Source of the DNA: Diplonema japonicum
Taxonomy: Eukaryota; Protista; Euglenozoa: Diplonemea
DNA length: 64,000 bases
Direction: 5' to 3'
NCBI GenBank assembly: GCA_964019335.1
Contig: OZ025726.1
Location: forward strand, 393,703 to 457,702
Shown: piece by piece, positions 3 to 64,000 of the stretch
Layout of the letters: every line of letters starts with the position of its first letter
Numbering within the stretch: the stretch's first letter is position 1
Notes under the pieces: model-generated
The model's input: the letters and a program-made list of their open reading frames with translations, nothing else
Databases searched by the model: none
What the model was told of the DNA's origin: nothing
Program-made: the position numbers and the translations under genes

Positions 3-3000
3 TTGCTTTACTGCGTTGCCGACGCCCTCGCTGATGAGTGCGTTCACCTTTCCGCTTTGCATGCTGAGTTCATCACACATTGTCTGCATCTCCTTTGGCA
101 GATTCTCCGTCAGTTTCTCGAGTTGGTTATTGATACAGTCACTGTCTCCGGTGACTTTGCTCAGCGCTTGCTCGATGTGTGTCTTCAGTTCTCCTGCATG
201 CTCTTCTTGAGCAGTGAGGCACTTGGCCACTTCAGCAGCAACAACTGTTGTTACCACACGCGATAGGTGTTCTTCGTTACGCAGGGCCTCGCTGGGCATG
301 CTATTTTGCAGGATTTCGCTGGCAGTGTGCAGCTCGTCAAGTTTCTTGTGCGCCTCTTCCAGTGCACCCTTCACGATGTCGGTGACGGTGGTCTCTGTCA
401 GGTGTTCTTCGGGAAGCTTCTTGCCCACCTCATTGATGGCCTTCTTCACTTCAGTGAGCAAATCGTCACTGTTCGAGGCCTTCTGTGCCTCTTCCATGGC
501 GCCGTTCACGATGTCAGCCACTGCAGATCCCGTCAAGTGCTCTTCAGGTAACTTCTCACCCACCTCATCGATGGCCTTCTTCACTTCGGTCAGCAGGTCA
601 TTGTTTGAAGCCTTCTGTGCCTCTTCCATGGCGTCTTTTACGATGTCGGCAACTGCAGATCCCGTCAAGTGCTCTTCAGGTAACTTCTCACCCACCTCAT
701 CGATGGCCTTCTTCACTTCGGTGAGAAGGTCGTCATTGGAAGCCTTCTCTTCTATGGTGCTTTTCACAATGTCTGCTACCACCGATCTCGTCAGGTGCTC
801 TTCAGGTAACTTCTGCCTTACTTCCTCGACGATGTTCTTCACCTCCACCAGAGCCGGAGGCACGTTGGTGCTCAACTCCTCGGTAAGCAACGCCACCTGT
901 GCGGTGACGACACCTTCCACAATCTCCCGCACACTGTCTGCAGTCAAGCTTTCGCATGCTGCATCCACGTCGGTTGCTTCCCTCGCACTTTGAAGAGCGT
1001 CGAGCTTCCTGTGCGTCTCTTCTGCCACGTTCACCACAATGTCCTTCACAGCAGACCCCGTCAAGTGTTCTTCGGGAAGTTTCTTGCTTACCTCATCGAT
1101 GGCCTTCTTCACTTCGGTGAACTGATCGTCACTGTTCGAGGCCTTCTGTGCCTCCTCCAGGGCACTCTTCACGACTTGTGTCACGTCATCCGTTGTCAGG
1201 TGGTCTGCCTCCCTCAACTCCTTGCTGAGTGTTGCGACCTGCGCAGCGACTGTACTCTCGACAATTTCTCGTACATTGTCCACCGTCAAGGCGTTGGTGT
1301 TTGCAGCATCCAGGAACTTTGATGTTGCACTGTGTTCATTGCAGAGGGCGTCCAGCTTCTCGTGTACTTTCTCCATCACATTTGCTATCGCCTGCTCCGT
1401 CATGTCAGGTATTTTGTTTCTCAGTTCATCAATCGAGTTCCCCACTTCCAAGAGGATCTCGTCGCTGCTCTGTTGTGCGTCTTCCAAAACTCTCCTCACA
1501 ATGTCAGTTATGACAGCCCCTGTCAGGTTTTCTTCAGGTAGCTTCTTGCCCACCTCATCAATTGCGTTTTTCATTTCAGTGATCAGCCTGACACTGGCAT
1601 CTTTGTCATTCTGCGCCACCACTGCATTCGTCACGATACTTGCAACAGCGGCTTCTGTCAAGTGCTCCTCGGGTATGCTACTTTGCAGGGTCTCGCTGGC
1701 AGTGTGCAGCTCGTCGAGCTTCTTGTGCGCCTCTTCCAGTGCACCCTTCACGATGTCGGTAACGGTAGTCTCTGTCAGGTGTTCTTCGGGGAGCTTCTTG
1801 CCCACCTCATCGACGGCTTTCTTCACTTCGGTGAGCAGGTTGTCACTGTTCGAGGCCTTCTGTGCCTCTTCCATGGCGCCGTTCACGATGTCAGCCACTG
1901 CAGATCTCGTCAGGTGCTCCTCAGGTAACTTCTCACTCACCTCATCGATGGCTTTCTTCACTTCTGTAAGCAGGTTGTAACTGTTCGAGGCCTTCTGTGC
2001 CTCTTCCAGAGCACTCTTCACGACTCGTGCCACGTCATCTTTTGTCAGGTGTTCTTCAGGCATTTTCTTATCATCATCTGCCTTCTGTGCCTCTTCCATG
2101 GCGTCTTTCACGATGTCAGCCACTGCAGATCCCGTCAAGTGCTCTTCAGGTAGCTTCTTACCCACCTCATCGATGGCCTTCTCCACTTCGGTGAGTAGAT
2201 CCCTGTTTGAAGTTTTCTGTGCCTCTTCCATGGTGCTCTTCACAATGTCAACCACTGCAGATCCCGTCAAGTGTTCTTCAGGTAACTTCTCACCCACCTC
2301 ATCGATGGCCTTCTTCACTTCGGTGAGCAGGTCGTCATTGGAAGCCTTCTGTGCCTCTTCCACGGTGTTTTTCACAATGTCAGCCACTGCAGATCCCGTC
2401 AAGTGCTCTTCAGGTAACTTCTTGATCACCATGTCGACTGCCTTCATCACTTCCGCAAGTAGTTTGTCTTCTTTCTCGTTGTTCAACGTTTCCACTTTCA
2501 CACCAATGCTCTCTACAAGGTCCTGTATGCTGGCTTTGTCTAAAGCTTTACTGTGTATTCCTTCAGCGGTGAGAGGTGCTTCCTTCTCGACATGAAGTGC
2601 ATCGATCTTGCTGTGTGCCTCCTCCACTGCGCCCTTTACAATGTCCTTCATAGCAAGCCCTGTCAGGTGTTCTTCGGGAAGCTTCTTGATCACCTCATCG
2701 ATGGCCTTCTTCATTTCAGTGAACTGATTGTCGTTGACTGCATTCGTAACGATTTCCGACACATCGCTTCTTGTGAGGTGTGTCTCAGGCATTTCCCTGC
2801 TGGTCTCGGTGACGTGATCCTGCAATCCTTTGCTCAGTGCTTCTACTTGCGTTGTAACAATATCACCCACTACTTCTCGCAAACTGTCGGCGGTCAGTCC
2901 CTCAGGTGCATCCCGTTTGTTGAGTGTGTCGATCTTTGTGTGCGCCTCTTCCAGTGCAGCCTTTATGATCACAGTGATGGAAGTCTCTGTCAGGGGTTCT

Positions 3001-5858
3001 TCAGGTAACTTCTCACCCACCTCATCGATGGCCTTCTTCACTTCAGTGAGCAGGTCGTCATTGGAAGCCTTCTGTGCCTCTTCTATGATGCTCTTCACAA
3101 TGTCAGCAACTGCAGATTCCGTCAGGTGTGTCTGGTGTTCTGCTGGCAGCCTGTCCAACCTCTCAACGGCGTTGTTCAGCTTGTTATCAACTGTTTCTTG
3201 TGATGCAAGCACGTCGAGCACACTGTCCTTGATACCCTGCAGGAGGGCCAAGGTCCCTTCCCCTGCGTCGTTGGTCAGTGGTGCCCCCGCCTCGCACAAA
3301 TCCTCTTCTTTTGTTTTAACAACGACCTCGGCCTCTTGGTAACACTCTACCACCCCCTGCGTTTCTTTTGTTTTTTGGTCGTCCTTCTTCGCCATCACAT
3401 TCGTCACGATACTTGCAACAGCGGCTTCTGTCAAGTGCTCCTCGGGTATGCTACTTTGCAGGGTCTCGCTGGCAATGCGCAGCTCGTCGAGCTTCTTGTG
3501 CGCCTCTTCCAGTGCACCCTTCACGATGTCGGTAACGGTAGTCTCTGTCAGGTGTTCTTCGGGAAGCTTCTTGCCCACCTCATCGATGGCTTTCTTCACT
3601 TCGGTGAGCAGGTTGTCACTGTTCGAGGCCTTCTGTGCCTCTTCCAGAGCACTCTTCACGACTCGTGCCACGTCATCTTTTGTCAGGTGTTCTTCAGGTT
3701 TTTTCTCATCATCATCTGCCTTCTGTGCCTCTTCCATGGCGTCTTTCACGATGTCAGCCACTGCAGATCCCGTCAAGTGCTCTTCAGGTAACTTCCTACC
3801 CACCTCATCGATGGCCTTCTCCACTTCTGTGAGCAGGTCCCTGTTTGAAGTTTTCTGTGCCTCTTTCATGGCGTCCTTCACAATGTCAACCACTGCAGAT
3901 CCCGTCAAGTGTTCTTCAGGTAACTTCTCACCCACCTCATCGATGGCCTTCTTCACTTCGGTGAGCAGGTCGTCATTGGAAGCCTTCTGTGCCTCTTCCA
4001 TGGTGCTCTTCACGATGTCAGCCACTGCAGACCCTGTCAGGTGTTCTTCGGGAAGCTTCTCACTCACCTCATCGATGGCCTTCTTCATTTCAGTGAGCAG
4101 GTTGTCACTGTTCGAGGCCTTCTGTGCCTCTTCCATGGCGTCTTTCACGATGTCAGCCACTGCAGATCCCGTCAAGTGCTCTTTGGGCATCTTAGTACCT
4201 ACATCATCGACAGTCTCCTTCATGTGAGCCACATCACCGCTAGTGCGCTTCAGTTCATCGCTAAGTGTAGTCACTTGCGTTGTAAGTACATTCAGCAACT
4301 GAGGTGCCACACCCTCCACTCTGTCCTTGATGCCATTCAGGAGGGCTAACGTCTCCTCCGGAGTGGACTTGCCGATCGCTTCCTTCACAACGCTTCCAAC
4401 TTTGTCTGCAGTGAGAGCACTCCCGGGCTTCTCTGCCAGCGACGTTTTCATACCTTCGCATGCCTTTAACAACGTCTTGTTGCCCTTGGCGAGCTCTTGC
4501 AGGGTGGTGTTCATGGTAACTAGTGGGTCAGACTTGGCCTTGCGGACCTCGAGGGCTGCCTTGATGTCGGAGAGCGTCTTACCCACATCGCCTGACGCAG
4601 TGCCTACTGTGTCTAACTTCTTGTTGGTGCTCGCCGCTGCTTGAGAGATAACTTTGCTAACTTCTGCCAATGTGAGGCGTTCCCTTGCCGCTTCCGTCTG
4701 CATAGCCTTCAGGATGATGTGGTTCTCCTCGTTCGCTTTGCTACTAGCCGCATCAAGATTTTCTACTTTCTTCTCAACTGCGGTGACGCTGTCCGCAATC
4801 TTTGCGACTTCGTGCTGCACAAGCTCCGCCAGCACCTCCATGTCGATGGTCTGCTTGCAGATGTCTTGGATCTTTTTGAAGAACTGCCCTGACGGCACGG
4901 TGATTTGCGGTGAGCGCTCCTTCTCATTTTGAATTGCTTTGATTTCCTCGCTGAAGCTGTGCCCAGCACGGGGGGTTGAACTCGTGCTTGCTTCTTCAGC
5001 TTGTGGTTCCACTTGGGTCTTTCTGAAAAGACTTGGTACAATGTACAACAGAAAGGCAACAACAGACCCGATGGCAAGAAAGGTCATCAGCTGCTGCTGG
5101 TGGTGTTCATGGAAGGCTCTGTGATCGTTGTCGGCCCGCCTGCGTTCCTCGGTCAAGCTTTTAAGCGTTTCGAACATCTTGCGGAGTTCGTCATCCGACG
5201 GTCCGGCATGGTGGGCAGGGACAGGGACAGGGTGCACAGGGCCCACTTCTACAGGATGCGGTGGGGGCACAACAGGGATCGTGGGTGTGGACGTGGGCAC
5301 ATCAATGACCGGACAGGTCTGATTAATAAAGACCTCCACCTCCTTGATGACTGTCTTGACGGTTGTCGTGTTCACCACACGCACCTCGACCTTGGGCTCT
5401 GGGTAGTACTTAGGGCCTGACCAAATGCGGTCACTTACTCTGCTGGTGAAGAGTGCAACAGAAGAGACACCGAAACCAGACACCACTGAGGCCATGGTTA
5501 GCTTCTCAGCCATGATGTAAGTAAGGGTAGCAGGACCCATGTTGCCAAGCAGTCCAAGGGCACCAAGTTGCGCTGCGACCATCGGCCCGACAGGAGTCAT
5601 CAGGACTGCTCCCCCTGTGACCAGACCAGCACCTACCCCCACTACCACATCAGTCGGCCTGTACATCCACATGTCCCCCATGATGGGTACTTGCTTCTTT
5701 TTAAGAGGTGGTTTAACATCCTTCTGCTCCGAGTCGGTGCAAGGGCTGAGGCTAGGGTCGTCGGGGCTAACAGGGACTGGGGCTGAGTTCGGTTCTTCCC
5801 CTCCACACACCCCAACTGATATTAGCAGCACAGCACATATCACTCCACGGGCTTTCAT
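3..5858 (-). CDS. Giant (>=1952 aa, 3'-partial) membrane protein with signal peptide, TM segments and tandem ~44-aa helical repeats
   Basis: ATG at 5858 (MKARGVICAVLLISVGVCGGEEP), then hydrophobic segments (e.g. LMTFLAIGSVVAFLLYIV) and repeats of EHLTGSAVADIVKDAMEEAQKASNNDLLTEVKKAIDEVGEKLP with a 132-nt period. The plus-strand shadow ORFs all sit in one register, consistent with a single frame open to the window edge; that is why the ORF track omits it. Confidence 0.85.
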   Translation of the reverse strand, partial: MKARGVICAVLLISVGVCGGEEPNSAPVPVSPDDPSLSPCTDSEQKDVKPPLKKKQVPIMGDMWMYRPTDVVVGVGAGLVTGGAVLMTPVGPMVAAQLGALGLLGNMGPATLTYIMAEKLTMASVVSGFGVSSVALFTSRVSDRIWSGPKYYPEPKVEVRVVNTTTVKTVIKEVEVFINQTCPVIDVPTSTPTIPVVPPPHPVEVGPVHPVPVPAHHAGPSDDELRKMFETLKSLTEERRRADNDHRAFHEHHQQQLMTFLAIGSVVAFLLYIVPSLFRKTQVEPQAEEASTSSTPRAGHSFSEEIKAIQNEKERSPQITVPSGQFFKKIQDICKQTIDMEVLAELVQHEVAKIADSVTAVEKKVENLDAASSKANEENHIILKAMQTEAARERLTLAEVSKVISQAAASTNKKLDTVGTASGDVGKTLSDIKAALEVRKAKSDPLVTMNTTLQELAKGNKTLLKACEGMKTSLAEKPGSALTADKVGSVVKEAIGKSTPEETLALLNGIKDRVEGVAPQLLNVLTTQVTTLSDELKRTSGDVAHMKETVDDVGTKMPKEHLTGSAVADIVKDAMEEAQKASNSDNLLTEMKKAIDEVSEKLPEEHLTGSAVADIVKSTMEEAQKASNDDLLTEVKKAIDEVGEKLPEEHLTGSAVVDIVKDAMKEAQKTSNRDLLTEVEKAIDEVGRKLPEEHLTGSAVADIVKDAMEEAQKADDDEKKPEEHLTKDDVARVVKSALEEAQKASNSDNLLTEVKKAIDEVGKKLPEEHLTETTVTDIVKGALEEAHKKLDELRIASETLQSSIPEEHLTEAAVASIVTNVMAKKDDQKTKETQGVVECYQEAEVVVKTKEEDLCEAGAPLTNDAGEGTLALLQGIKDSVLDVLASQETVDNKLNNAVERLDRLPAEHQTHLTESAVADIVKSIIEEAQKASNDDLLTEVKKAIDEVGEKLPEEPLTETSITVIIKAALEEAHTKIDTLNKRDAPEGLTADSLREVVGDIVTTQVEALSKGLQDHVTETSREMPETHLTRSDVSEIVTNAVNDNQFTEMKKAIDEVIKKLPEEHLTGLAMKDIVKGAVEEAHSKIDALHVEKEAPLTAEGIHSKALDKASIQDLVESIGVKVETLNNEKEDKLLAEVMKAVDMVIKKLPEEHLTGSAVADIVKNTVEEAQKASNDDLLTEVKKAIDEVGEKLPEEHLTGSAVVDIVKSTMEEAQKTSNRDLLTEVEKAIDEVGKKLPEEHLTGSAVADIVKDAMEEAQKADDDKKMPEEHLTKDDVARVVKSALEEAQKASNSYNLLTEVKKAIDEVSEKLPEEHLTRSAVADIVNGAMEEAQKASNSDNLLTEVKKAVDEVGKKLPEEHLTETTVTDIVKGALEEAHKKLDELHTASETLQSSIPEEHLTEAAVASIVTNAVVAQNDKDASVRLITEMKNAIDEVGKKLPEENLTGAVITDIVRRVLEDAQQSSDEILLEVGNSIDELRNKIPDMTEQAIANVMEKVHEKLDALCNEHSATSKFLDAANTNALTVDNVREIVESTVAAQVATLSKELREADHLTTDDVTQVVKSALEEAQKASNSDDQFTEVKKAIDEVSKKLPEEHLTGSAVKDIVVNVAEETHRKLDALQSAREATDVDAACESLTADSVREIVEGVVTAQVALLTEELSTNVPPALVEVKNIVEEVRQKLPEEHLTRSVVADIVKSTIEEKASNDDLLTEVKKAIDEVGEKLPEEHLTGSAVADIVKDAMEEAQKASNNDLLTEVKKAIDEVGEKLPEEHLTGSAVADIVNGAMEEAQKASNSDDLLTEVKKAINEVGKKLPEEHLTETTVTDIVKGALEEAHKKLDELHTASEILQNSMPSEALRNEEHLSRVVTTVVAAEVAKCLTAQEEHAGELKTHIEQALSKVTGDSDCINNQLEKLTENLPKEMQTMCDELSMQSGKVNALISEGVGNAVKQ

Positions 5859-55097: not shown

Positions 55098-55694
55098 TCA
55101 TTCTCTCACCTTCTCATAAGCAATCTTTGCTGCAAACACAGGTATGCTTGCTAAATTAGTTAACTTATCTACAGGGTTTGTGTTCAATGGGTTCATGACG
55201 TTGACAGCATTGTCCTTCATAAGATAAAGGTCTGCCTTTTGTTTCATTTTCAACAACTCCTTTTTAGATTTAGCAACACGTCCTGCGTGGTGGTAACGTA
55301 GATCATGGTACATTGCTGCTTCATCCATAGTACTCTTTGGCGGTGTTTTTATTGCTTTTGAGTTTACTTTCTCCCCTTCCCATGCTCTTTTAGCGTTCGC
55401 ATCCAGGTTATTTATTCTCTCCTCCAACTTAGTTCCCGGACCTGCAAACGCTGCTTTTTCAACCCCTTTTGAGGTGACGACTGGTAAGTGCAACTCTGTG
55501 TTTGGGAACGTGTCTGTGATAAACTTCTGAAGGTCTCCACCTTTCTTTCTTTTCATTGGTATAAAGGTAAACTACTTTGTTCCACACGACTTGCAGATGC
55601 TCTTTATTGCTCGTCGCTTGTTTTTAGTTTCCACTTCCTCCCTATTTTCTGATAAAGTTCTTGCTCTACATTTAACACAATATGAAGTGCTCAT
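55098..55694 (-). pseudogene. Zn-ribbon (CxxC...CxxC) fused to parvovirus-type phospholipase A2 (adintovirus PLA2X-like), one in-frame TAG at 55572-55574
   Basis: MSTSYCVKCRART...TKNKRRAIKSICKSCGTK*FTFIPMKRKKGG|DL..., FAGPGTKL (Ca loop), DEAAMYHDLRY (catalytic HD), KAD. Confidence 0.85.
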
Positions 55695-56142
55695 CTTTTA
55701 TTACGAATCTCACCAATTAGTTTCTCTTCATTCTCTTTTTGATTTATTGAGAAGACCTTGTGAACAAAATCATAAAACCCATCCACAGGACCCTTTGAAC
55801 AGTAATATGTGTAGTACATGAAGTAGCAGCACCAGTGACCACAGAGTTTACTCATAGGGTGTTGAAGTGGGTATGTGTTGGCAAGGACATTGAGAGGAAT
55901 CACCTCCTCAAGAACCGGGGTAGCAAGGCTGTCAAAGTAGAGGTTCTGGGTTTTGTTCATGTAGAGGCAGACCCAATGTGTTCCTGGTCATTAGAATCGT
56001 CAAAGTTGATAACGTAGAATCCTGTTTGCAAACCATGAGGGAGTTCATCTCGCATGAAGACACCATGTAGGGGGATCTTATAGAAGCTACACCACTCAAC
56101 AATGTCAGAATCATATAACCCGTCTATCTCATGCACCATCAT
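55691..56142 (-). pseudogene. Adenain-like (adenovirus/Polinton) cysteine maturation protease with one frameshift
   Basis: GVFMRDELP, VINFDDSNDQ[G]THWVCLY (His restored by a frameshift near 55980), YFDS, Q...CGHWCCYF; its stop overlaps the next ATG (ATGA). Confidence 0.9.
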
Positions 56143-56144
56143 TT

Positions 56145-56434
56145 TTAAAGAGAACGAGGTAGAGTCTTACCTGGAATGTACAATCCTTTTCCAAACATCT
56201 TCTGTCCTAACTTCTTCCCTCCATGAGCCGCTAGAGCACTCAGACCTGCAACAATAGGTGCCAGGAATTGCAAGAAGCCACCCTGCTTCCTCATGTGCAA
56301 GAGTTGTGTTTTTGAGAGCTTCAACATCACACTAGTCTTTGAATTTACTGCTTTCATCAACTTGTTCTTTTGAGTCATTGTGATAGCTAGCTTATCACTC
56401 CCTGCCATTGAGGGATCAATCTTAAGGGTAACAC
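56145..56434 (-). pseudogene. 5'-truncated Polinton/adenovirus pX-like core protein
   Basis: VTLKID...GSDKLAITMTQKNKLMKA...LKLSKTQL...KQGG|FLQFLAPIVAGLSALA: a GG cleavage-like site followed by an amphipathic GGFL peptide. The 5' end is replaced by the insertion starting at 56435. Confidence 0.7.
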
Positions 56435-56507
56435 GGGGGACAAAATCCAACTCACAGCCTTCACGTGGCGTCCCCTGTAAGTAAGCTTCGGCTGAAACTA
56501 ATGTGAG
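56435..56507 (+). ncRNA. HDV-like self-cleaving ribozyme
   Basis: P1 GGGGGAC(56435-41)/GTCCCCT(56470-76) with G.U at the cleavage site; P2 CTCACA(56451-56)/TGTGAG(56502-07); P3 GCC/GGC closing the 7-nt L3 TTCACGT; P4 AGC-TTCG-GCT; J4/2 CTAA with putative catalytic C56498. Confidence 0.88.
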
Positions 56508-56714
56508 AGGTACCCAAGCTGTGGTGTGTGTGTGTGTGTGTGCGAACCTTGCCGGGGCTAGATTTAGAGCGGGCCCTGTTACCCATTCGCCCTGTCCTTG
56601 GTAAGCCTTGATGGTCGGAGGGGGTAAGGTAGCTGGTGTGTGCGTGGTTCCCCCCTGTGCTGTGTATCCGCTTTCGTTGTGACCGTTGCTGAATACGAAG
56701 TAGAAAAAAAAAAA
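56435..56714 (+). mobile_element. Short ribozyme-headed retroposon (SINE/SIDER-like) with (GT)n tract and A-tail
   Basis: Begins exactly at the ribozyme cleavage site, interrupts the pX-like gene, and ends in an A11 run at 56704-56714. No TSD identified. Confidence 0.6.
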
Positions 56715-56864
56715 GTAAACAAAACAAAAAAAAGAAAGCAACAACAAAAAAATGAAAAGAGGTTTTTTTTTAATTCAAAGTATCTTTTTGTTTTTGATGT
56801 TGGCAGGCACTAAAACAACCTTCATACGCTAACCACATCAAAATCAAAATCTATATCTTGGACT

Positions 56865-56911
56865 AAAAAAAAACCAACGATTCTAAAAAAAAACCAACGA
56901 TTCTAAAAAAA
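56865..56911 (+). repeat. Tandem reiteration of the SL 5' end (20-bp unit A7-AACCAACGATTCT)
   Basis: aaaaaaaaaccaacgattct occurs three times in exact tandem; the third copy continues into the full SL exon. Confidence 0.95.
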
Positions 56912-56950
56912 AACCAACGATTCTAAAGCTACAGTTTCTGTACTTTATTG
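56912..56950 (+). ncRNA. Complete 39-nt spliced-leader (mini-exon) sequence, diplonemid type
   Basis: AACCAACGATTCTAAAGCTACAGTTTCTGTACTTTATTG: 39 nt, with the conserved euglenozoan CAGTTTCTGTACTTTATTG 3' half and the AACCAACGAT 5' end recalled for Diplonema. Followed by GTCGTT rather than GTAT, and no obvious Sm site, so probably not an intact SL RNA gene. Confidence 0.92.
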
Positions 56951-57118
56951 GTCGTTCGTGTTCTGCTGGTGCCTGCCGCCTCTGCCTGGGTTTGCCGCTG
57001 CGTCCGTCGTCCGTCGTCGCCGTCGTCCGGGGGGGTTGTTTTGCCCGTCGGCCTGCCCGCCGCTCAACGAAAGGATCCCCTCCCCCCCATCACACACTAT
57101 AAAACAAAAAAAAAAAAA

Positions 57119-58194
57119 ATGGATCCAAGACGACTCGCAGGAGGAGGTGACCGCAGCCGCAGCCCGCAGGAGCAAGCCCGCAGCCCGCAGTGCACGGCAC
57201 CGAGACCCACCCAACCAGGCAATCTGGTTGGGCAGTATGAATCCCCACCCCCTAGATCCCCCCACCCCCCTTTAGAAAAAAAAAATAATAAAAAAAAAAA
57301 TCACAAGTAGAGACCGCGGTTTTGACCGCCACAACCAAGGGAGCAGCAGCCCCTGCTACAGCCACGGCCGCCCCGGCCGCAAGCACGACTGCTGCAGCAG
57401 CCCCAGCCGCACTGAACGCCGCAGCCGACCCTGCCGCCCCAAACGCCGCAGCCGCCCCTGCCGCAGCCACGACCGACACAACCACGATCGCCGCAGCCGC
57501 CCCTGCCGCCTTGAACGCTGCAGCCGCCCCTGCCGCAACTGAGACAGCCGCAGCCGCCCCTGCCGCAAGCCCGACCTCCGCAGCCGACCCTGCCATAGTT
57601 GAAGAGGAAAAAAAAAAGAAGAAAAAGGGGGAAGGGTGTATACTGAAAGATGGTGAGCACCCCCCCGGGTTGAAGACAGGTGCTGCCCCCGCCTTCCCAG
57701 AAGCTCTGCTGTCCGGGAAGTGGGAGGCCCTGTCAGGGAACACGGGGAGGGAGACGCTCCAGCATGGGCACCGGTGGGAGGGGACGGACGCCGAGGTGCG
57801 CCCCACCACCGGCATCCCAGGGGAGGCAAAGGGGTGGGTGAGGGAGGTGGCCGCCGCCGCAGGGCTCAAGGTGGTCCCCAACCAGGTACTTGTGAATAAG
57901 TACAGACCTGGTTGTGGGATTGCCGCCCACAAGGACGACGCAAGACTGGGACCGGTCGTCCTAGTCTTGTCGTACGGGGCTGAGACCACAATGGTCATGA
58001 GGAAGGGGGACAGGGTAGCGAGGTACCTGGTGCCCCCCTTCTCATGGGCACTGTTGGAAGGCGAAGCGAGACACCAGTGGACACACCACATCCCGTCAGG
58101 GGTGTCCACTGGTGTCAGGGTGTCGATCACCCTGCGTGCGGTTGGCCCCGAGCTCACCCACATACCCCCCCAGGAAGACCCACCCCTGGGCTAA
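57119..58194 (+). CDS. AlkB-family 2OG-Fe(II) dioxygenase with Ala/Pro-rich linker (probable start 57119 via a frameshift in the A-run at 57290-57300)
   Basis: PNQVLVNKYRPGCGIAAHKD (HxD), LSYG, LEGEARHQWTHHI (distal H), RVSITLR (RxSxTxR): a complete metal/2OG ligand set. Confidence 0.88.
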
Positions 58195-59873
58195 CAAACG
58201 AACCCCCCCCTTTTTTTTTAGAACCCTCCACGGAGGTAAAAAACAGACCCTCTTCGGAGGAAAATGGAGAGAGAGGGGAAGAGGCAGCGCTCCCAAAAGA
58301 GGGTAGTGTTCCTCCCCCCCATTTGTCCCCCCCTTTTTCATTTTTAGAGCCCTCTTTGGAGGAACCCTCCACGGAAAACAGACCCTCTTCGGAGGAAAAT
58401 AGAGAGAGAGGGGAAGAGGTGGCACCCCCGAGAGAGGGTAGTGTTCCTCCCCCCCATTTGTCCCCCCCTTTTTCATTTTTAGAGCCCTCCCCAGAGGGAC
58501 CCTCCACGGAGGTGAAAAACAGACCCTCTTCGGAGGAAAAAAAGGCAGAGGGAGAGACAGCACGCCCGAGAGAAGGTAGTGCTCCTCCCTCTCTGCCCCA
58601 TTTTTTCTGGACCCTCTACGGAGGTGTACACCCTGGTCCCCAAGGGCCGGGGGCTTTTTTTGAGGGTGGAAGGGAAAGAAAAAAAAAAACAAACAAGGAG
58701 GAACCTTTTTTCTTTTCAAACAACCAGGGGGACCCAGCACCCGCCCCCACCGCCTGCCAAGGTGTGGTTGGGGCGGAGGCTGCGAGCGACGTGAGAGCAC
58801 CACTGCACACCCTTGTGAGAAGACAGAAAAGAGCCCCCTGGATTGCCATGGGTGGCAGGGAACCTAAGCCAGCGCCCAAGAGGAAGAAGAACAGGAGGAG
58901 GCACAGGAGCGAAACGGCCCTTCAGAGGCGTCGGGAGAAGAGGACCAAGGCGAGGGAGGCTGCCAGACAGGAGAAGAAAAGGCACCGTCGTGCGAGGAAA
59001 GAAGGGAGGAGGAGGGCCCGCAGAGAGGAACACGAGGCCGCCCTGGAACAGAAGCCAGATGACCCTGCAATGGGGCTGAAGCTGACCGAGGTGGGAACGC
59101 CTGGAGCCCAACCCCTGGCACCCAGAATCCCGGCACCTGGGGCTGCAACCGGTGCAAGGAGGCACCGCAGACGGACGGGACACAGCAAGGAAGGGATGAG
59201 ATGGGAGCACCTGGGGGTGTGGGCCTGGGTCGCCCTGTTCTCCCTCTTGCTGATCCCAGGGGTGAGGCAGGTGCTGGGGGCGGGCATCGGGATGGCCCCC
59301 TCCTTCCTGCATGCTGCAGTGTTGTGGAAGAGGCCGGGGAGCGACAGGAGGACCACCCGCAGGTCAAGGGTACAGGTGGGGCCCCGAGGGGATGAATGGT
59401 CCGCCGGGGAGCTCGCTTGGCTAGCGGTAGGAGGCACCCTGGTGGGAAGCACTTCAGTTTGGATAGGGGGGCTGATGTCGCTCTGGGCCATGTCGGAAGT
59501 GATGGTGGGGAAAGCTGGTGCTGGCCCGACCCAGAGATTCGGACCGGTAAAGCTGAAGAAGACAAGACGCGGATCGAGAGGTCACTACCTGCCGGTGTAC
59601 TTGGGCCCGCCTAGAAGCTCAAGACGCAGAAAAAAGAAGGTGGACGCCAAGCAAGCGGCGAAGGAACGAGCTGAGACGGAGGATAAGCTCTTTCAGGCCG
59701 AACACCTGGACCCCTTTGCGGACTTGACGCTGGCAGGGGACGCGTTGCAAGGAGGTGGTGACCCTCCCCCCATGGATTTGGATGATGAGCACATGGAGGC
59801 GCAGAAGGAGGGGGAAAAAGAAGGATCAGACAAACATCAATGCCGGATGGAAGCAAACTGGTGTTTTACATGA
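58044..59873 (+). CDS. Retroelement middle ORF: repeats, Arg-rich basic tract, two hydrophobic segments
   Basis: 609-codon open frame between AlkB and the RT-thumb ORF, overlapping both; probably parts of one frameshifted polyprotein. Confidence 0.55.
   Translation: MGTVGRRSETPVDTPHPVRGVHWCQGVDHPACGWPRAHPHTPPGRPTPGLTNEPPPFFLEPSTEVKNRPSSEENGERGEEAALPKEGSVPPPHLSPPFSFLEPSLEEPSTENRPSSEENRERGEEVAPPREGSVPPPHLSPPFSFLEPSPEGPSTEVKNRPSSEEKKAEGETARPREGSAPPSLPHFFWTLYGGVHPGPQGPGAFFEGGRERKKKTNKEEPFFFSNNQGDPAPAPTACQGVVGAEAASDVRAPLHTLVRRQKRAPWIAMGGREPKPAPKRKKNRRRHRSETALQRRREKRTKAREAARQEKKRHRRARKEGRRRARREEHEAALEQKPDDPAMGLKLTEVGTPGAQPLAPRIPAPGAATGARRHRRRTGHSKEGMRWEHLGVWAWVALFSLLLIPGVRQVLGAGIGMAPSFLHAAVLWKRPGSDRRTTRRSRVQVGPRGDEWSAGELAWLAVGGTLVGSTSVWIGGLMSLWAMSEVMVGKAGAGPTQRFGPVKLKKTRRGSRGHYLPVYLGPPRSSRRRKKKVDAKQAAKERAETEDKLFQAEHLDPFADLTLAGDALQGGGDPPPMDLDDEHMEAQKEGEKEGSDKHQCRMEANWCFT
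58215..58625 (+). repeat. Three-plus tandem ~135-141-bp repeats within the retroelement
   Basis: cagaccctcttcggaggaaaa at 58244, 58379 and 58520; gagggtagtgttcctccccc recurs. Confidence 0.9.
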
Positions 59874-62800
59874 GAGTGGTCCCAGACTCGCATGTGGGAG
59901 GGGTCATGCACAGGTTCGACGAGATGGTGCGGAAGACGATGTCGAAGGTGTGCGGCATGCAGTTCGAGAACGGGTCGAAAGAATGGCAGCAGGCGAAACT
60001 GTCCGTAAAAGTCGGTGGGCTTGGGATGAGGAGCTGCCAGGAGCACCTGCGCGCGGCCAACATGGCTTCGGCGTCGACGATGAAGCTGTGCAAGGAGCTG
60101 GATCCCAAATACGAACATGGGCTGGAAGGGGGTGTATGGGGGAGCTGGCTCGAGTGGTTCAACAGGACGAAGGGCGGCATGCAGATTACACCCGACATGG
60201 TGGCCAAGGCCCCCCACATCTGCAGCCAGAGGTGGCTCTCTAGGGTGCTTGATGAGAAGGCGCTGGAGGACCTCTTGGCGAAAGCAGATGCACGCTCGAG
60301 AGCGAGGTTGATGTCGGAGTCAATGCACTATGCGGGAGCGTGGTTGACGGCGACGCCTGACTTCTACAACCAGCTGTCGGACAACGAGTTTGGGGCTCTG
60401 ATCAAGTGGTGGTTGGGGGCTCCGGTCTACAAGCAGGGTGAGAGCTGCCACGACCCGAGGTGCAAGACTGAGGGGATGGACGTATGGGGTGACCATGCCC
60501 AGGGATGCGGCAACGCCAGGATTGCGAGGCACGACCGGGTGAAGGAGACCATCCACAGACACTGTCAGTGGGCCGGGGTGAGCGCAACGATGGAGAAGAC
60601 GGGGCTGATCCCGGGGTCGTCCCAGCGCCCGGCGGACGTGTTCTTCCCAGGTGGGGTGGGGGGTTCCCGCCCAATGGCTATGGACGTGGTCATCGTGCAC
60701 CCGAGGAACGAGTCTTGTGTCAACCAGGCGGCGAAGACTGCGGGGTACGCAGCGGCGAAGGCGGAACACTACAAGCGCCAGAAGTATGAGGCGGAGCTCG
60801 CCAAGACACGCGTGGCCTTTGTACCTTTCGCGATGGAGACCTTTGGGGGGTTCGGGGAGGCAGCAGTCTACCTCACGAAGAAACTGTCCAGGAGCATAGC
60901 TGCGCGGGCTCACGGGGACAGAGTCTCGATACACAGGCGTGTGGTCCAAGAGGTGTCAACGGCCATGATGAGATCGATAGCAGGGGCGCTGTTAGTCAAA
61001 GGGCCTGTACAGTTGGATCCAGGGCCCCCGGTACCGGACGGCGAAGAGGAAAAAAAGGACAACGAGGAAGCGAACAACGAACCCAACACTGAATCCAACA
61101 CTGACCTCACAGAGGACTCCTTCGGCAATGAAAAAACCACCGAAGCTGAGGAGTCGTCCGAGAGGGAAGTGAAGGGACAGGGAGGCGGACCCCCAATCAC
61201 GGTGGCCCACCAGCTGGATGCCCTTCTGGAGCAGACGAAGAAGGACCTGGACGCCCGAATGCAGCAGCAGCGAAAGGCGGAACCGGTGGAGGGTGGAACA
61301 CAAGGGAAAGCGGGAGCAGGACTCGAAGCAGCCTCGCCGGGAGGAGAAGACACGGAGATGGTCGGAACAGGATCCAGCGAGAGGGCTGGGCAGGGAGGGG
61401 AGCTTGACCCGAAGGCCCAGGAAGATGGGAAGAGACAAGGGGCGACTGACGCTGCGGTGAACCAGACCTTGGACCAGTGTCCTAAGGGGGATACGGAGGC
61501 CCAGAGGGACTCGAACAAGGGGGACCAGAGTGCGACAACTGCTACGAGGAAGATGACCGTGAGCGAATTCTGTAGGGAACAAGCTGCGAAGAGACAGGGC
61601 GGTGGGAGGACTCTGAAGCCGCAGGCGGATGACGCCCCCGAAGGGACCAAAGAGGGCGGGAACGCACCGAGCGGAGGCAGCCAGTCGGGGCCTGACACAC
61701 CTAGGGGTGGGATCCAGACGCCGGAGGGAGATCAGCTGATGGGAGTCGGGGCACCGGAAAGGGAACAGCAGGTGGAAGTAGGGGGAGACTTCGTTCAGCT
61801 TGACCCGATTGATGTGGTGATGGGCATCCCAATTCCGAGAGCGATGGTGCCACTGAGGGCGAGGCCGGGGGACCGACTGCTCAAGTTCATCATCCAGTTC
61901 GAGGGCCGGGTGGAGATCATCCTTGAAGAAGGAACGGACCCTGGAAGGGAGAGGACTGAGGAGATGCTTCTTGCGAAGGCCGAGTCGCTGGGTGTTCCAC
62001 TGGAGGTGGCTATGGCTGGCCAGATTGGTATCGCTGGACTTGGATACATGATGGTAAAGCAGTACTTCGCAAGCTTGGAAGGTGGGTCGGACGGAGAGCG
62101 CCGCAGCCGCATTGTGGGTTGTGAGGTGCAGAAGTCGGAAACATACCGCGAGTTCGAGTTCCCGAGGACGGTCCAGGATTTCCAGATCACGTACGCGTGT
62201 GGGTGTTCGGCGGTGCAACCTGTTCGTTTCAAGGGTGGCGTGCTCAAGGGGACTCTGGAAACGGCATGGGGGGTGGTCAAGTTGCAGACCCGGGGGTGCA
62301 GACACCACCCGACACTGGGGAAGGAAGGGGTAGTGGGCATTGCGGCGGGAGCCGGCGCTACCAAGGTGACACTACGTGAGTTCTTGGAGAGGTGCGACGC
62401 AAGGATAAGGGCCCCAGTGGGAAAGGTCAAGGACCTGATCAAAGTGAAGGCGTGGGTGAGGGATGGAAGGAAGGTCACCCTCGACGTCTACGAGGGGAGG
62501 GGGCCCTGCGAGAAGGAGACGAGGCGCACTGTCCAGGACCATCTGCGGAAGATGGGTGTTGAAGAGGTCGACCTGCAGTCAGCGGTGGTGACGGTCCCGG
62601 GGTTGTTCGAGGACGTCTCCTTTGAGAGGTACCTTGGGCTGTTGGCCCGGAAGAAGGAGGAAGACAGGGAGAGGCGGCCTGAGGTGGTTGCCACGGACCT
62701 CCCCACCCTGGAAGAGCTGAAGTGGAGCAAGAAGGACAAGAAGCGGGCCCGGGCCCGATCGGCCAGTACTGACTCGGATTGTGTGGAGGGTGGCTACATC

Positions 62801-63082
62801 TATCTGAAGGGTACGGGGGCGGATGGCACCGTGGTCGAAGCCAACATATGCAGGGGTGAGCTCAAGGGGATGACCGGGCCCCAGTTCAAGTTCTTGGCGG
62901 AGCACAGGTTGATGGAAGAGCTGGGGAGCGACGACCTGGTGCGGGACACGGTCAAGGTGCGCAACAAGGAGAACTGGGCCCCGGTGAACAGTGCGGTGGC
63001 TTGGCTGCAGCTCGAGTCGGGGAGGGCACGGGTGGGGCCCATACCCCACAAGAAGAGGTCCAAAGGCTCGCTGGCCAGATAG
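59840..63082 (+). CDS. CRE-clade RT thumb / CCHC zinc knuckle / restriction-like endonuclease plus ~690-aa C-terminal extension; RT catalytic core absent
   Basis: KLVFYMR..P, WQQAKLSVKVGGLG, AGAWLTATP, CHDPRC...DVWGDHAQGC, RHD, RPAD, DVVIVHP, AEHYKRQKY, FVPFAMETFG; no QGDPLGP or YxDD anywhere upstream. Confidence 0.88.
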   Translation: MPDGSKLVFYMRVVPDSHVGGVMHRFDEMVRKTMSKVCGMQFENGSKEWQQAKLSVKVGGLGMRSCQEHLRAANMASASTMKLCKELDPKYEHGLEGGVWGSWLEWFNRTKGGMQITPDMVAKAPHICSQRWLSRVLDEKALEDLLAKADARSRARLMSESMHYAGAWLTATPDFYNQLSDNEFGALIKWWLGAPVYKQGESCHDPRCKTEGMDVWGDHAQGCGNARIARHDRVKETIHRHCQWAGVSATMEKTGLIPGSSQRPADVFFPGGVGGSRPMAMDVVIVHPRNESCVNQAAKTAGYAAAKAEHYKRQKYEAELAKTRVAFVPFAMETFGGFGEAAVYLTKKLSRSIAARAHGDRVSIHRRVVQEVSTAMMRSIAGALLVKGPVQLDPGPPVPDGEEEKKDNEEANNEPNTESNTDLTEDSFGNEKTTEAEESSEREVKGQGGGPPITVAHQLDALLEQTKKDLDARMQQQRKAEPVEGGTQGKAGAGLEAASPGGEDTEMVGTGSSERAGQGGELDPKAQEDGKRQGATDAAVNQTLDQCPKGDTEAQRDSNKGDQSATTATRKMTVSEFCREQAAKRQGGGRTLKPQADDAPEGTKEGGNAPSGGSQSGPDTPRGGIQTPEGDQLMGVGAPEREQQVEVGGDFVQLDPIDVVMGIPIPRAMVPLRARPGDRLLKFIIQFEGRVEIILEEGTDPGRERTEEMLLAKAESLGVPLEVAMAGQIGIAGLGYMMVKQYFASLEGGSDGERRSRIVGCEVQKSETYREFEFPRTVQDFQITYACGCSAVQPVRFKGGVLKGTLETAWGVVKLQTRGCRHHPTLGKEGVVGIAAGAGATKVTLREFLERCDARIRAPVGKVKDLIKVKAWVRDGRKVTLDVYEGRGPCEKETRRTVQDHLRKMGVEEVDLQSAVVTVPGLFEDVSFERYLGLLARKKEEDRERRPEVVATDLPTLEELKWSKKDKKRARARSASTDSDCVEGGYIYLKGTGADGTVVEANICRGELKGMTGPQFKFLAEHRLMEELGSDDLVRDTVKVRNKENWAPVNSAVAWLQLESGRARVGPIPHKKRSKGSLAR

Positions 63083-63717
63083 GCCAGCGGGGGTGTGGGG
63101 GGCTGTTCTCCCCCGCCATAGGAAGATGTGAAACTTTTTTTTTTTTTCTGAGAAAAAAAAAAAAGGGAAAAATAAAAGAATAGGGAACAGGTGCTACAAC
63201 GGCCAGGCTAGATAGAACCACTTAGATTTTTTTTTTTTTTTTCCTTTTTTTTTTTCTTTTTGTTTTTCCTTTTTTTTTTTTTTTTTTTTATTTTTCTGTT
63301 TTTCTTTTTCTTTTTCTTTTTGAAGTGGAACCATCTCGGTCGACGTTTTTTTTTTTCTTTTTTCTTTTGTGGTGATGTGTTTTTCCTGTTTTTGATTTTC
63401 TTCTTCCCCCGCTCTATGCTTTTTCGCATGGACATTGGCCACTCTGCCCCTTTCCCCTTTTTTGATTCTCCCTCTTTCCCCCTCCTAAATTTTACCCCCT
63501 GCCCCACTCATTCCTCCCTAGTATGTTTTTGAATTTGCCTCTTCTTCTTTTAAGCCTTTTTTGAGATTTTTATTTTTGAATTTTTATCATTTGGAGTTGC
63601 TTCTTCTTCTTCCCCTCTCCCTCCCATAAAGAAAAAGAGAAACCCATGCCTTCCTCCCAGGTTGGAACTTGATTGTCTGTTTTGGAATATTTTTATTTTC
63701 TCTTAAGATTTATCGTG

Positions 63718-64000
63718 CCCGCAAACCCGCAAACCCGCAAACCCGCAAACCCGCAAACCCGCAAACCCGCAAACCCGCAAACCCGCAAACCCGCAAACCC
63801 GCAAACCCGCAAACCCGCAAACCCGCAAACCCGCAAACCCGCAAACCCGCAAACCCGCAAACCCGCAAACCCGCAAACCCGCAAACCCGCAAACCCGCAA
63901 ACCCGCAAACCCGCAAACCCGCAAACCCGCAAACCCGCAAACCCGCAAACCCGCAAACCCGCAAACCCGCAAACCCGCAAACCCGCAAACCCGCAAACCC
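63718..64000. repeat. Perfect (CCCGCAAA)n tandem array, ~35 units, running off the window
   Basis: Directly visible 8-bp period. Confidence 0.97.

Follow-up and report, generated by a model that had tools for sequence, protein, structure and literature searches.

An AlkB dioxygenase domain within the polyprotein of a chromosome-end retrotransposon family of Diplonema japonicum

In the diplonemid Diplonema japonicum, a stretch of 64,000 nucleotides reaching the end of a contig (GenBank assembly GCA_964019335.1, contig OZ025726.1, positions 393,703 to 457,702 of the forward strand; hereafter the window) contains a frame for an AlkB-type dioxygenase behind a spliced leader (SL) and ahead of retroelement frames. 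This raises the question of whether AlkB belongs to the retroelement or is a host gene lying beside it, and of what such an enzyme would do there. Extra enzymatic domains fixed in retrotransposons without long terminal repeats (non-LTR retrotransposons) are rare, and each has revealed a step at which the element fights or exploits its host. A previous reading of the window (hereafter the sequence-only reading) had proposed an AlkB demethylase domain carried by an SL-associated non-LTR retrotransposon, and had named a profile search, a phylogeny against host ALKBH genes and substitution ratios across copies as checks. We are nearly certain that AlkB is a built-in, selected module of a non-LTR retrotransposon of about 10 kb with a restriction-like endonuclease (RLE), rather than a host gene lying next to it.

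The AlkB match in the window is real and not a product of chance. The open reading frame (ORF) at 57322-58194 on the plus strand matched the Pfam model 2OG-FeII_Oxy_2 (PF13532) with an E value of 1.5e-14 and 55.1 bits, above the curated cut-off of 31.2, and this threshold was also passed by AlkB of three other element subfamilies (B, C and D) and of Diplonema papillatum. An AlphaFold2 model of 57634-58176 had a mean predicted local distance difference test score of 95.6 and a predicted template modelling (TM) score of 0.90. With this model, Foldseek retrieved ALKBH6, ALKBH8, ALKBH2/3 and E. coli AlkB at a probability of 1.00 and TM scores of 0.6-0.72, in agreement with the double-stranded beta-helix fold of the AlkB family. 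ALKBH6 and ALKBH8 ranked highest among the solved AlkB homologues found at this probability, ahead of Ofd2, NMAD-1, ALKBH2/3/5 and E. coli AlkB; the top solved match by sequence was ALKBH8 (E value 2.3e-9). Iron ligands are found in the H-K-D motif at 57928-57936 and, for the second histidine, within WTHH at 58078-58089, and the 2-oxoglutarate arginines lie in RVSITLR at 58117-58137. In an alignment of 61 sequences, H99, D101 and H151 were invariant and R162 and R168 were conserved in at least 90%, which gives the HxD...H iron triad and the RxxxxxR arginines of the AlkB family. Positions 57634-58176 of the plus strand are thereby confirmed to encode a complete AlkB fold with all five catalytic residues. 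The sequence-only reading had assigned an AlkB-type dioxygenase with all its ligands to 57119-58194, and the profile, the model and the structure search agree with it, with the ligands where it had put them.

To assess the distribution of this domain, the genome (62.5 Mb in 132 contigs) was searched in six frames with the window AlkB ORF. At least 130 matches were found, almost all of them within about 10 kb of contig ends. Matches at low coordinates were on the minus strand and those at high coordinates on the plus strand, so that the copies point outward, and many were in very long open frames. An alternative is that a host ALKBH retrocopy came to stand by chance beside a truncated retroelement at this locus only. 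The window copy has features of this kind: it carries AlkB in a frame of its own, lacks the reverse transcriptase (RT) and, headed by the leader, looks like a processed retrocopy. Against this alternative stand the number of copies and the fact that several subfamilies, and D. papillatum too, have AlkB fused in frame with OTU, RT and RLE.

The architecture of the family is best seen in intact copies. The copy at the start of contig C9 (L034, subfamily B) has a single ORF of 2866 aa in which Pfam placed AlkB at residues 228-361, an OTU cysteine protease at 1004-1109 and RT at 1509-1712, followed 3' of RT by a CCHC motif, RLE and about 790 residues without a known domain. In two further subfamilies that diverge more strongly, the AlkB-OTU-RT order was found again: in a 3005-aa ORF of subfamily C (L077), in a 10,659-bp tandem array on contig C24, and in a single ORF of subfamily D (L078, the C18 copy). 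The intact order is AlkB, OTU protease, zinc fingers, RT, CCHC/RLE and a long C-terminal region, all in one ORF of 2866-3005 aa. The RT domain of full-length copies matched RVT_1 with E values of 3e-16 to 1e-18, with RHD...RPAD...D and CCHC motifs downstream. RT followed by CCHC and a PD-(D/E)xK-type endonuclease, with no LTRs, is the arrangement of RLE-type (R2-group) non-LTR elements, of which the window copy retains the RLE part only. In D. papillatum, a cluster look-up and Pfam revealed two proteins, KAJ9442719.1 (2635 aa) and KAJ9464152.1 (1964 aa), with AlkB, OTU and RT at matching order and spacing; both are named "Retrotransposable element SLACS 132 kDa protein" in GenBank. The proposal that AlkB is borne by a non-LTR retrotransposon with RLE is therefore upheld, since AlkB goes together with RT and RLE in all subfamilies as well as in D. 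papillatum; it is neither confined to this locus nor absent from full-length members.

Two further D. papillatum proteins, KAJ9439924.1 and KAJ9446222.1, are retrotransposon AlkB/OTU fragments labelled "tRNA (carboxymethyluridine(34)-5-O)-methyltransferase", a name probably transferred in error from ALKBH8 by automatic annotation. SLACS-like RTs are listed in the genome paper of D. papillatum, which apart from these counts "a dozen" AlkB-type genes and takes them as a sign of methylation-based gene regulation by the host (PMC10161547). Some, at least, of this dozen are retrotransposon domains named ALKBH8-like or "SLACS", which corrects the literature.

We next evaluated the constraint on AlkB. 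All 36 domain copies fetched were free of stop codons, and 34 of them kept all five catalytic residues. By the Nei-Gojobori method, the ratio of nonsynonymous to synonymous substitution rates (dN/dS) of AlkB was 0.14-0.20 between subfamily A (the window type) and subfamily B, at an unsaturated dS of about 0.33, and about 0.25 against subfamily C, for an overall range of 0.14-0.26. In the comparison of B with C, in which dS is near saturation as between distant subfamilies and the ratios are rough, AlkB was the best-conserved domain of the polyprotein (72% amino acid identity, dN/dS 0.23), ahead of RT (55%, 0.22), OTU (35%, 0.55) and the C-terminal region (27%, 0.65). AlkB is under purifying selection as strong as that on RT.

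A search with the Pfam model detected about 16 internal AlkB loci of host type. A quick maximum-likelihood tree, whose backbone is poorly resolved, united the elements of D. papillatum with the four subfamilies of D. japonicum (Shimodaira-Hasegawa-like approximate likelihood ratio test 84), and none of the 16 host paralogues fell inside this group. The best host matches to the element AlkB reached about 30 bits (30-36% identity), against 71 bits for the best relative in a HMMER search over 1.84 billion representative proteins, among the top matches of which were D. papillatum proteins at about 42% identity. Copy number, in-frame fusions, D. papillatum homologues and the tree together refute the host retrocopy, to which we give virtually no credence.

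The origin of the domain was addressed in the same searches. The closest standalone relatives of the element AlkB were unnamed metagenome proteins of 160-200 aa. In a protein atlas, the nearest clusters were labelled mostly viral (giant viruses, phages), and the best viral structure matches in Foldseek were pithovirus and megavirus AlkBs, then AlkB in polyproteins of Picornavirales, flexiviruses and closteroviruses; labels and structure matches are leads towards viral relatives rather than tests. Scanning metagenomes with the element-AlkB alignment yielded 30 loci (28-50% identity); RT and OTU matches were absent from all of them, and no environmental relative of the fusion came to light. PHROGs gave no useful information on two of these loci or on the window domain. 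A word-based protein search with the AlkB region, over proteins of 160-507 aa and 1576-5015 aa, gave no match and missed the D. papillatum homologues too, which indicates low sensitivity and not absence. For the RT-RLE part, 390 homologues at 30-45% identity were found; the top 120 matches included no trypanosomatid protein, and the nearest were unnamed proteins of dinoflagellates, a sponge and moths. The nearest homologues of ordinary length listed RVT_1 alone in precomputed Pfam lists, in a search whose length window is blind to longer fusions, and on this account AlkB and OTU look like additions made in the diplonemid lineage. Subfamilies B and C are most alike in the 5' module (dS 0.3-0.9, against 1.3-1.8 elsewhere). 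The window copy and L034 show the converse, with 80-84% identity in the 5' part and 99.6% over the last 3.9 kb, which suggests a chimeric history of the window copy, with exchange of 5' modules between subfamilies.

Nearly every chromosome end carries the family, whose copies lie within (CCCGCAAA)n and have their sense strand directed outward. At the window copy, the repeat follows the element as 35.4 perfect units (63718-64000, plus strand; Tandem Repeats Finder, TRF, and sequence) up to the end of contig C79, and is both the target of the family and the end repeat. The same repeat stands ahead of the heads of many copies (L004, L013, L015, L018, L020, L023, L027 and L030) and ends contig C9. 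Confinement to ends, one orientation and location in the terminal repeat are those of a telomere-specific element, contig ends being taken as chromosome ends. Of note, the C-rich strand of the end repeat runs 5' to 3' toward the contig end both at the right end (window 63718-64000) and at the left end (L034, C9:1 to about 700), which is the reverse of canonical telomeres. The exclusive position of the family at such reverse-oriented repeats bears on how diplonemid chromosome ends are built.

The head of the element is a copied SL. The window element begins with the complete 38-nt leader, ACCAACGATTCTAAAGCTACAGTTTCTGTACTTTATTG (56913-56950, plus strand). The genome contains 226 occurrences of the 3' part of the SL (24 nt). 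At nine internal sites, a T-run and the leader are followed by the conserved sequence GT(A/G)TC(C/G)GACCGTGCCAATAAAG, that is GT(A/G)TC(C/G)GACCGTGCC, and these sites look like SL RNA genes. They are dispersed, with no tandem array: C7:48931, C11:179640, C15:625750, C18:512233, C18:650552, C21:296526, C21:305022, C21:439247 and C27:253676 (L045, L047, L048, L050-L055). Rfam, run on window positions 54-64 kb, gave sub-threshold matches only and no SL RNA family. Unlike the SL RNA genes, the element continues after the SL with GTCGTTCGTGTTCTGCTGG (that is, GTCGTTCGTG), and the upstream flanks of element heads are mutually unrelated, often being end repeat or the 3' untranslated region (UTR) of another copy. 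SL RNA genes were rejected as the insertion target because what follows the SL in the element is unlike the intron of the SL RNA genes; moreover, end repeats or other copies flank the element. The insertion into SL RNA genes that is typical of the CRE clade was not found in this family, and "SL-associated" does not apply in the CRE/SLACS sense: the SL is a copied RNA head, and the target is the end repeat.

Each of the 27 distinct element heads begins at nucleotide 1 or 2 of the SL, 21 of them with ACCAACG and the rest with CCAACG. In some copies (L002, L014, L015, L020 and L027) the SL is joined at other points of the 5' UTR. Full heads and varied joints imply that the SL is acquired at the RNA level and that reverse transcription regularly reaches the end of the RNA. 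Before the full leader of the window copy, two 3'-truncated SL pieces (CCAACGATTCT), each followed by an A-run, are stacked at 56863-56912 of the plus strand (TRF period 20, 3.2 copies, 100% matches), and stacked partial leaders are also present upstream of L007, L016, L022 and L023; we infer repeated template jumps at the RNA 5' end. At seven sites, a full SL is followed by SL nucleotides 23-38 (a "relic leader"), the expected product of re-splicing at an AG within the encoded leader.

Further repeat families of this genome also have a complete SL as their head, at C1:890270, C3:59839 and C10:536456 (L038, L041, L046), at C2:150571, C4:650090 and C27:396666 (L040, L043, L056) and at C17:633368 (L049). 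They include a non-coding unit of about 290 nt and a family with an ORF ("MAGEPPSGGPGSS...") that joins the leader at two points, and one site has the leader, 12 nt and poly(A) only. Each of them starts with (A)CCAACG, and the search reported no AlkB match in their vicinity. It seems that leader-capped RNAs are retroposed generally in this genome.

These heads bear on one possible role of AlkB, namely that it clears cap-proximal base methylation on the SL, of a cap-4-like type, and so lets RT copy the leader to nucleotide 1. Methylated bases of such a kind cannot pair normally, as is established chemistry, and every distinct head does reach nucleotide 1 or 2. The SL-headed families with no AlkB match nearby, however, start in the same way, although they could be copied in trans by element proteins, and a need at only four nucleotides would leave the RT-like constraint on AlkB unexplained. 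Trypanosomatid cap 4 includes 3-methyluridine (m3U) at position 4 (PMC1636459), which has no counterpart here, as the leader begins ACCA with no U at position 4. A full-text literature search found no paper on diplonemid cap structure. We consider this role improbable.

The family appears to be transcribed. In sequencing run X5, from the same organism as the DNA runs and not recorded as RNA, depth was about 78,000 over the SL and 25-700 over the element. X5 behaves as RNA, because this ratio does not fit the genomic copy numbers. Contigs from X5 were 99-100% identical to the window over the AlkB part, and one crosses the window's deletion joint (described below) into unlike sequence, as a full-length copy would. 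This suggests transcription of the element family, by contigs that cannot show transcript ends. Contigs also join unrelated sequence at 56950/56951. The joints from 56950 to 57101, 57608 and 58673 were considered as splice forms of the element and rejected; they are other SL-bearing RNAs aligned onto A-rich runs.

What AlkB does for the element can be proposed in outline. The best explanation overall, which we hold with moderate confidence, is a chromosome-end RLE retrotransposon whose AlkB acts on element RNA or on single-stranded nucleic acid. That its substrate is the element's own RNA template is a more tentative proposition, on which we stop just short of an even chance. The polyprotein would bind the RNA from which it was translated, and AlkB would oxidatively strip base methyls from the same RNA or from single-stranded nucleic acid within the complex. 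The marks removed could be hard stops of the 1-methyladenosine/3-methylcytidine (m1A/m3C) type or a regulatory mark such as N6-methyladenosine (m6A), and the outcome would be full copying of the template of about 10 kb or escape from methylation-based control, an idea already put forward for plant RNA viruses with AlkB and for the orchid Gypsy AlkB (see below). RLE would nick the end repeat on its G-rich strand, (TTTGCGGG)n, and cDNA synthesis would start from the 3' end of this strand; such a course is in keeping with the junction ...GTGCC|CGCAAACC and with the outward direction of the sense strand.

Several points weigh against this account. The nearest solved relatives (ALKBH8, ALKBH6 and Ofd2) are neither classic m1A/m3C repair enzymes nor m6A erasers, so that they do not fix a substrate class; ALKBH8 is a tRNA hydroxylase, and ALKBH6 has no established substrate. 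AlkB activity is a prediction, and expression was deduced from a run that has no RNA record. The window copy has no RT and cannot make protein from its own start codon, the dN/dS ratios between distant subfamilies are rough, as said above, and placement in the CRE clade comes solely from the automatic "SLACS" names in GenBank.

Some of the structural neighbours point elsewhere. AlkB might repair or demethylate the single-stranded target or the cDNA at the chromosome end, or hydroxylate a protein such as chromatin or the polyprotein. The neighbours include the DNA enzymes ALKBH2/3, E. coli AlkB and NMAD-1, along with Ofd2 and ALKBH6, and the element works on repeat DNA at chromosome ends; the best solved sequence match, on the other hand, is the RNA enzyme ALKBH8. 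We regard a DNA- or protein-directed role as a minor prospect, on a par with clearing of the SL cap.

One retrotransposon with AlkB has been described. A Ty3/Gypsy lineage of the orchid Phalaenopsis encodes an AlkB with m6A demethylase activity in vitro, which was viewed as an answer to epitranscriptomic surveillance (Alvarado-Marchena et al. 2022, PMC9289625). AlkB in the diplonemid element could likewise be a counter-defence eraser that removes a host mark such as m6A from element RNA, so that the RNA evades decay, sequestration or silencing, with no role in polymerisation. Purifying selection on AlkB is in line with this, and suppression of silencing has been discussed as a possible role of viral AlkB (PMC544882). 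The domain, however, is not of the ALKBH5/9/10 or FTO type as judged by sequence or by the ranking of its predicted fold, and we consider an eraser of this kind rather unlikely. In both the orchid and the diplonemids, a retrotransposon lineage has fixed an extra AlkB 2-oxoglutarate dioxygenase, and a role on its own RNA has been proposed for the orchid one. The orchid element differs in being an LTR element with AlkB in an additional ORF, close to plant m6A demethylases and gained recently in one genus. The diplonemid element is a non-LTR element with RLE, and its AlkB, which is N-terminal in a single polyprotein and paired with OTU, bears a resemblance to ALKBH6/8 and to small AlkBs of viruses and is common to two species at about 42% identity, unlike the single-genus gain in orchids.

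A second parallel is with plant RNA viruses. AlkB domains are found in replicase polyproteins of Flexiviridae and Closteroviridae, and an OTU-like protease adjoins AlkB in several flexiviruses (Bratlie & Drablos 2005, PMC544882). The diplonemid element, like these viruses, has an RNA genome or intermediate and AlkB within its replication polyprotein, paired with OTU, and the viral domains are structural neighbours of the AlkB model. The viruses differ in using an RNA-dependent RNA polymerase and in that their AlkB integration was judged recent and sporadic; their domains share 14-26% identity with the diplonemid domain in Foldseek alignments. The AlkB-OTU pairing raises the question of convergence or exchange with flexivirus replicases. 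As AlkB is already known in one orchid Gypsy lineage and in plant RNA viruses, the element is a known kind in a new form.

The classical SL-associated elements CRE1/2, SLACS and CZAR insert into SL RNA genes. The diplonemid family resembles them in its euglenozoan host, in RT followed by CCHC and RLE, in zinc fingers upstream of RT and in site specificity, and differs from them in its copied SL head, its end-repeat target, a length two to three times theirs, and AlkB and OTU. Restriction to chromosome ends, fixed orientation and head-to-tail arrays with short runs of end repeat between copies are shared with SART1/TRAS1 of Bombyx, MoTeR/FoTeR of fungi and HeT-A/TART of Drosophila; we know of no description of AlkB or OTU in SART1/TRAS1, MoTeR, FoTeR or HeT-A/TART. 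Unlike at those telomeric elements, the repeat here is an 8-mer with the C-rich strand 5' to 3' toward the contig end. A full-text literature search found no paper in which the coding sequence of a non-LTR element includes AlkB or OTU, and none on diplonemid telomeric retrotransposons.

To return to the preferred explanation, an AlkB under RT-like constraint in two diplonemid species suggests that base methylation, of RNA or DNA, limits retrotransposition, and the family would be a natural test system for this. A bolder version, for which we see only a slim chance, is that the element carries a "template-cleaning" AlkB that erases RT-blocking methylations, possibly cap-proximal ones, to give complete 10-kb cDNAs to leader nucleotide 1, that the AlkB-OTU pair was assembled independently of RNA-virus replicases or exchanged with them, and that the family may help build the reverse-oriented ends.

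The copy in the window (56913-63719) is a dead, internally deleted member of this chromosome-end family, with neither RT nor OTU; all features given here are on the plus strand. In blastn against L034, identity was 80% over 56912-57133, 84% over 57452-58207, 97.2% over 58373-59853 and 99.6% over 59852-63719. The leader is followed by a 5' UTR of 168 nt (56951-57118), about 80% identical to the L034 5' end. The ATG at 57119, the first after the complete SL, opens an N-terminal piece (MDPRR..., 57119-57310, in the ORF 56948-57310) that is continuous with AlkB in the intact L034. Here this piece ends in a stop codon at 57308-57310 and AlkB lies in another frame, open only from 57292, so that it is out of frame with its own start codon. 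The AlkB-bearing frame (57322-58194), recognized by Pfam, AlphaFold2, Foldseek and the catalytic residues, consists of Ala/Pro/Thr-rich repeats and then AlkB (fold 57634-58176, Pfam match 57733-58137). A polyprotein linker in a shifted frame, with 135-bp repeats and basic low-complexity sequence, extends over 58044-59873 (ORF, TRF, L034 alignment), up to the deletion joint. The two frame changes lie at an A-rich run near 57.29 kb and at a C-run near 58.18 kb. The sequence-only reading had described AlkB as the first ORF behind the SL, co-oriented, intronless and overlapping the downstream frames. All frames are indeed co-oriented and need no intron, but AlkB is not in frame with the first ATG, and the overlaps are two frame breaks in one ancestral giant ORF, as intact relatives have it.

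At 59852-59853, blastn against L034 jumps from 2790 to 5412, the mark of a 2621-bp internal deletion that removed OTU, the zinc fingers and most of RT. The 82-nt sequence of the joint was found only in the window copy among the scored genome matches, and its halves are about 2.66 kb apart in other copies, with a 2-nt overlap at the joint. As the joint occurs nowhere else among these matches, the deletion is private to the window copy, and a propagating non-autonomous deletion subfamily was rejected. Beyond the joint, a 1080-aa ORF (59840-63082), with no Pfam match, encodes a C-terminal remnant of RT (GGLGMRS, 60014-60034), CCHC and RLE (60446-60703) and the C-terminal region of about 790 aa without a known domain. 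The 3' UTR (63083-63719) lacks the last ~95 nt present in L034: the alignment stops at 63719, and the L034 3' UTR goes on to "...CTCAAGTCCCCCTTTTTAAAAAAA" before its repeat array. In the AlkB-OTU linker, a 135-bp tandem repeat (58221-58589, 2.7 copies, 84% matches) encodes repeated "EPSTEVKNRPSSEE..." units.

Two observations concern the flank just upstream of the element. At 56424-56499 (plus strand), about 490 nt before the element head, Rfam gave a sub-threshold match to the hepatitis delta virus-like CPEB3 ribozyme (23.2 bits, gathering score 35, E value 0.016). This match is probably due to chance, and it is not part of the element, because upstream flanks differ between copies. At 55098-56747, minus-strand ORFs gave a sub-threshold match to the parvovirus-type phospholipase A2 family PF08398 (E value 6e-4, 20.5 bits, cut-off 23.9) and carry a "G-HW" motif reminiscent of adenain/Ulp-type cysteine proteases; they may be the remnant of another mobile or virus-like element.

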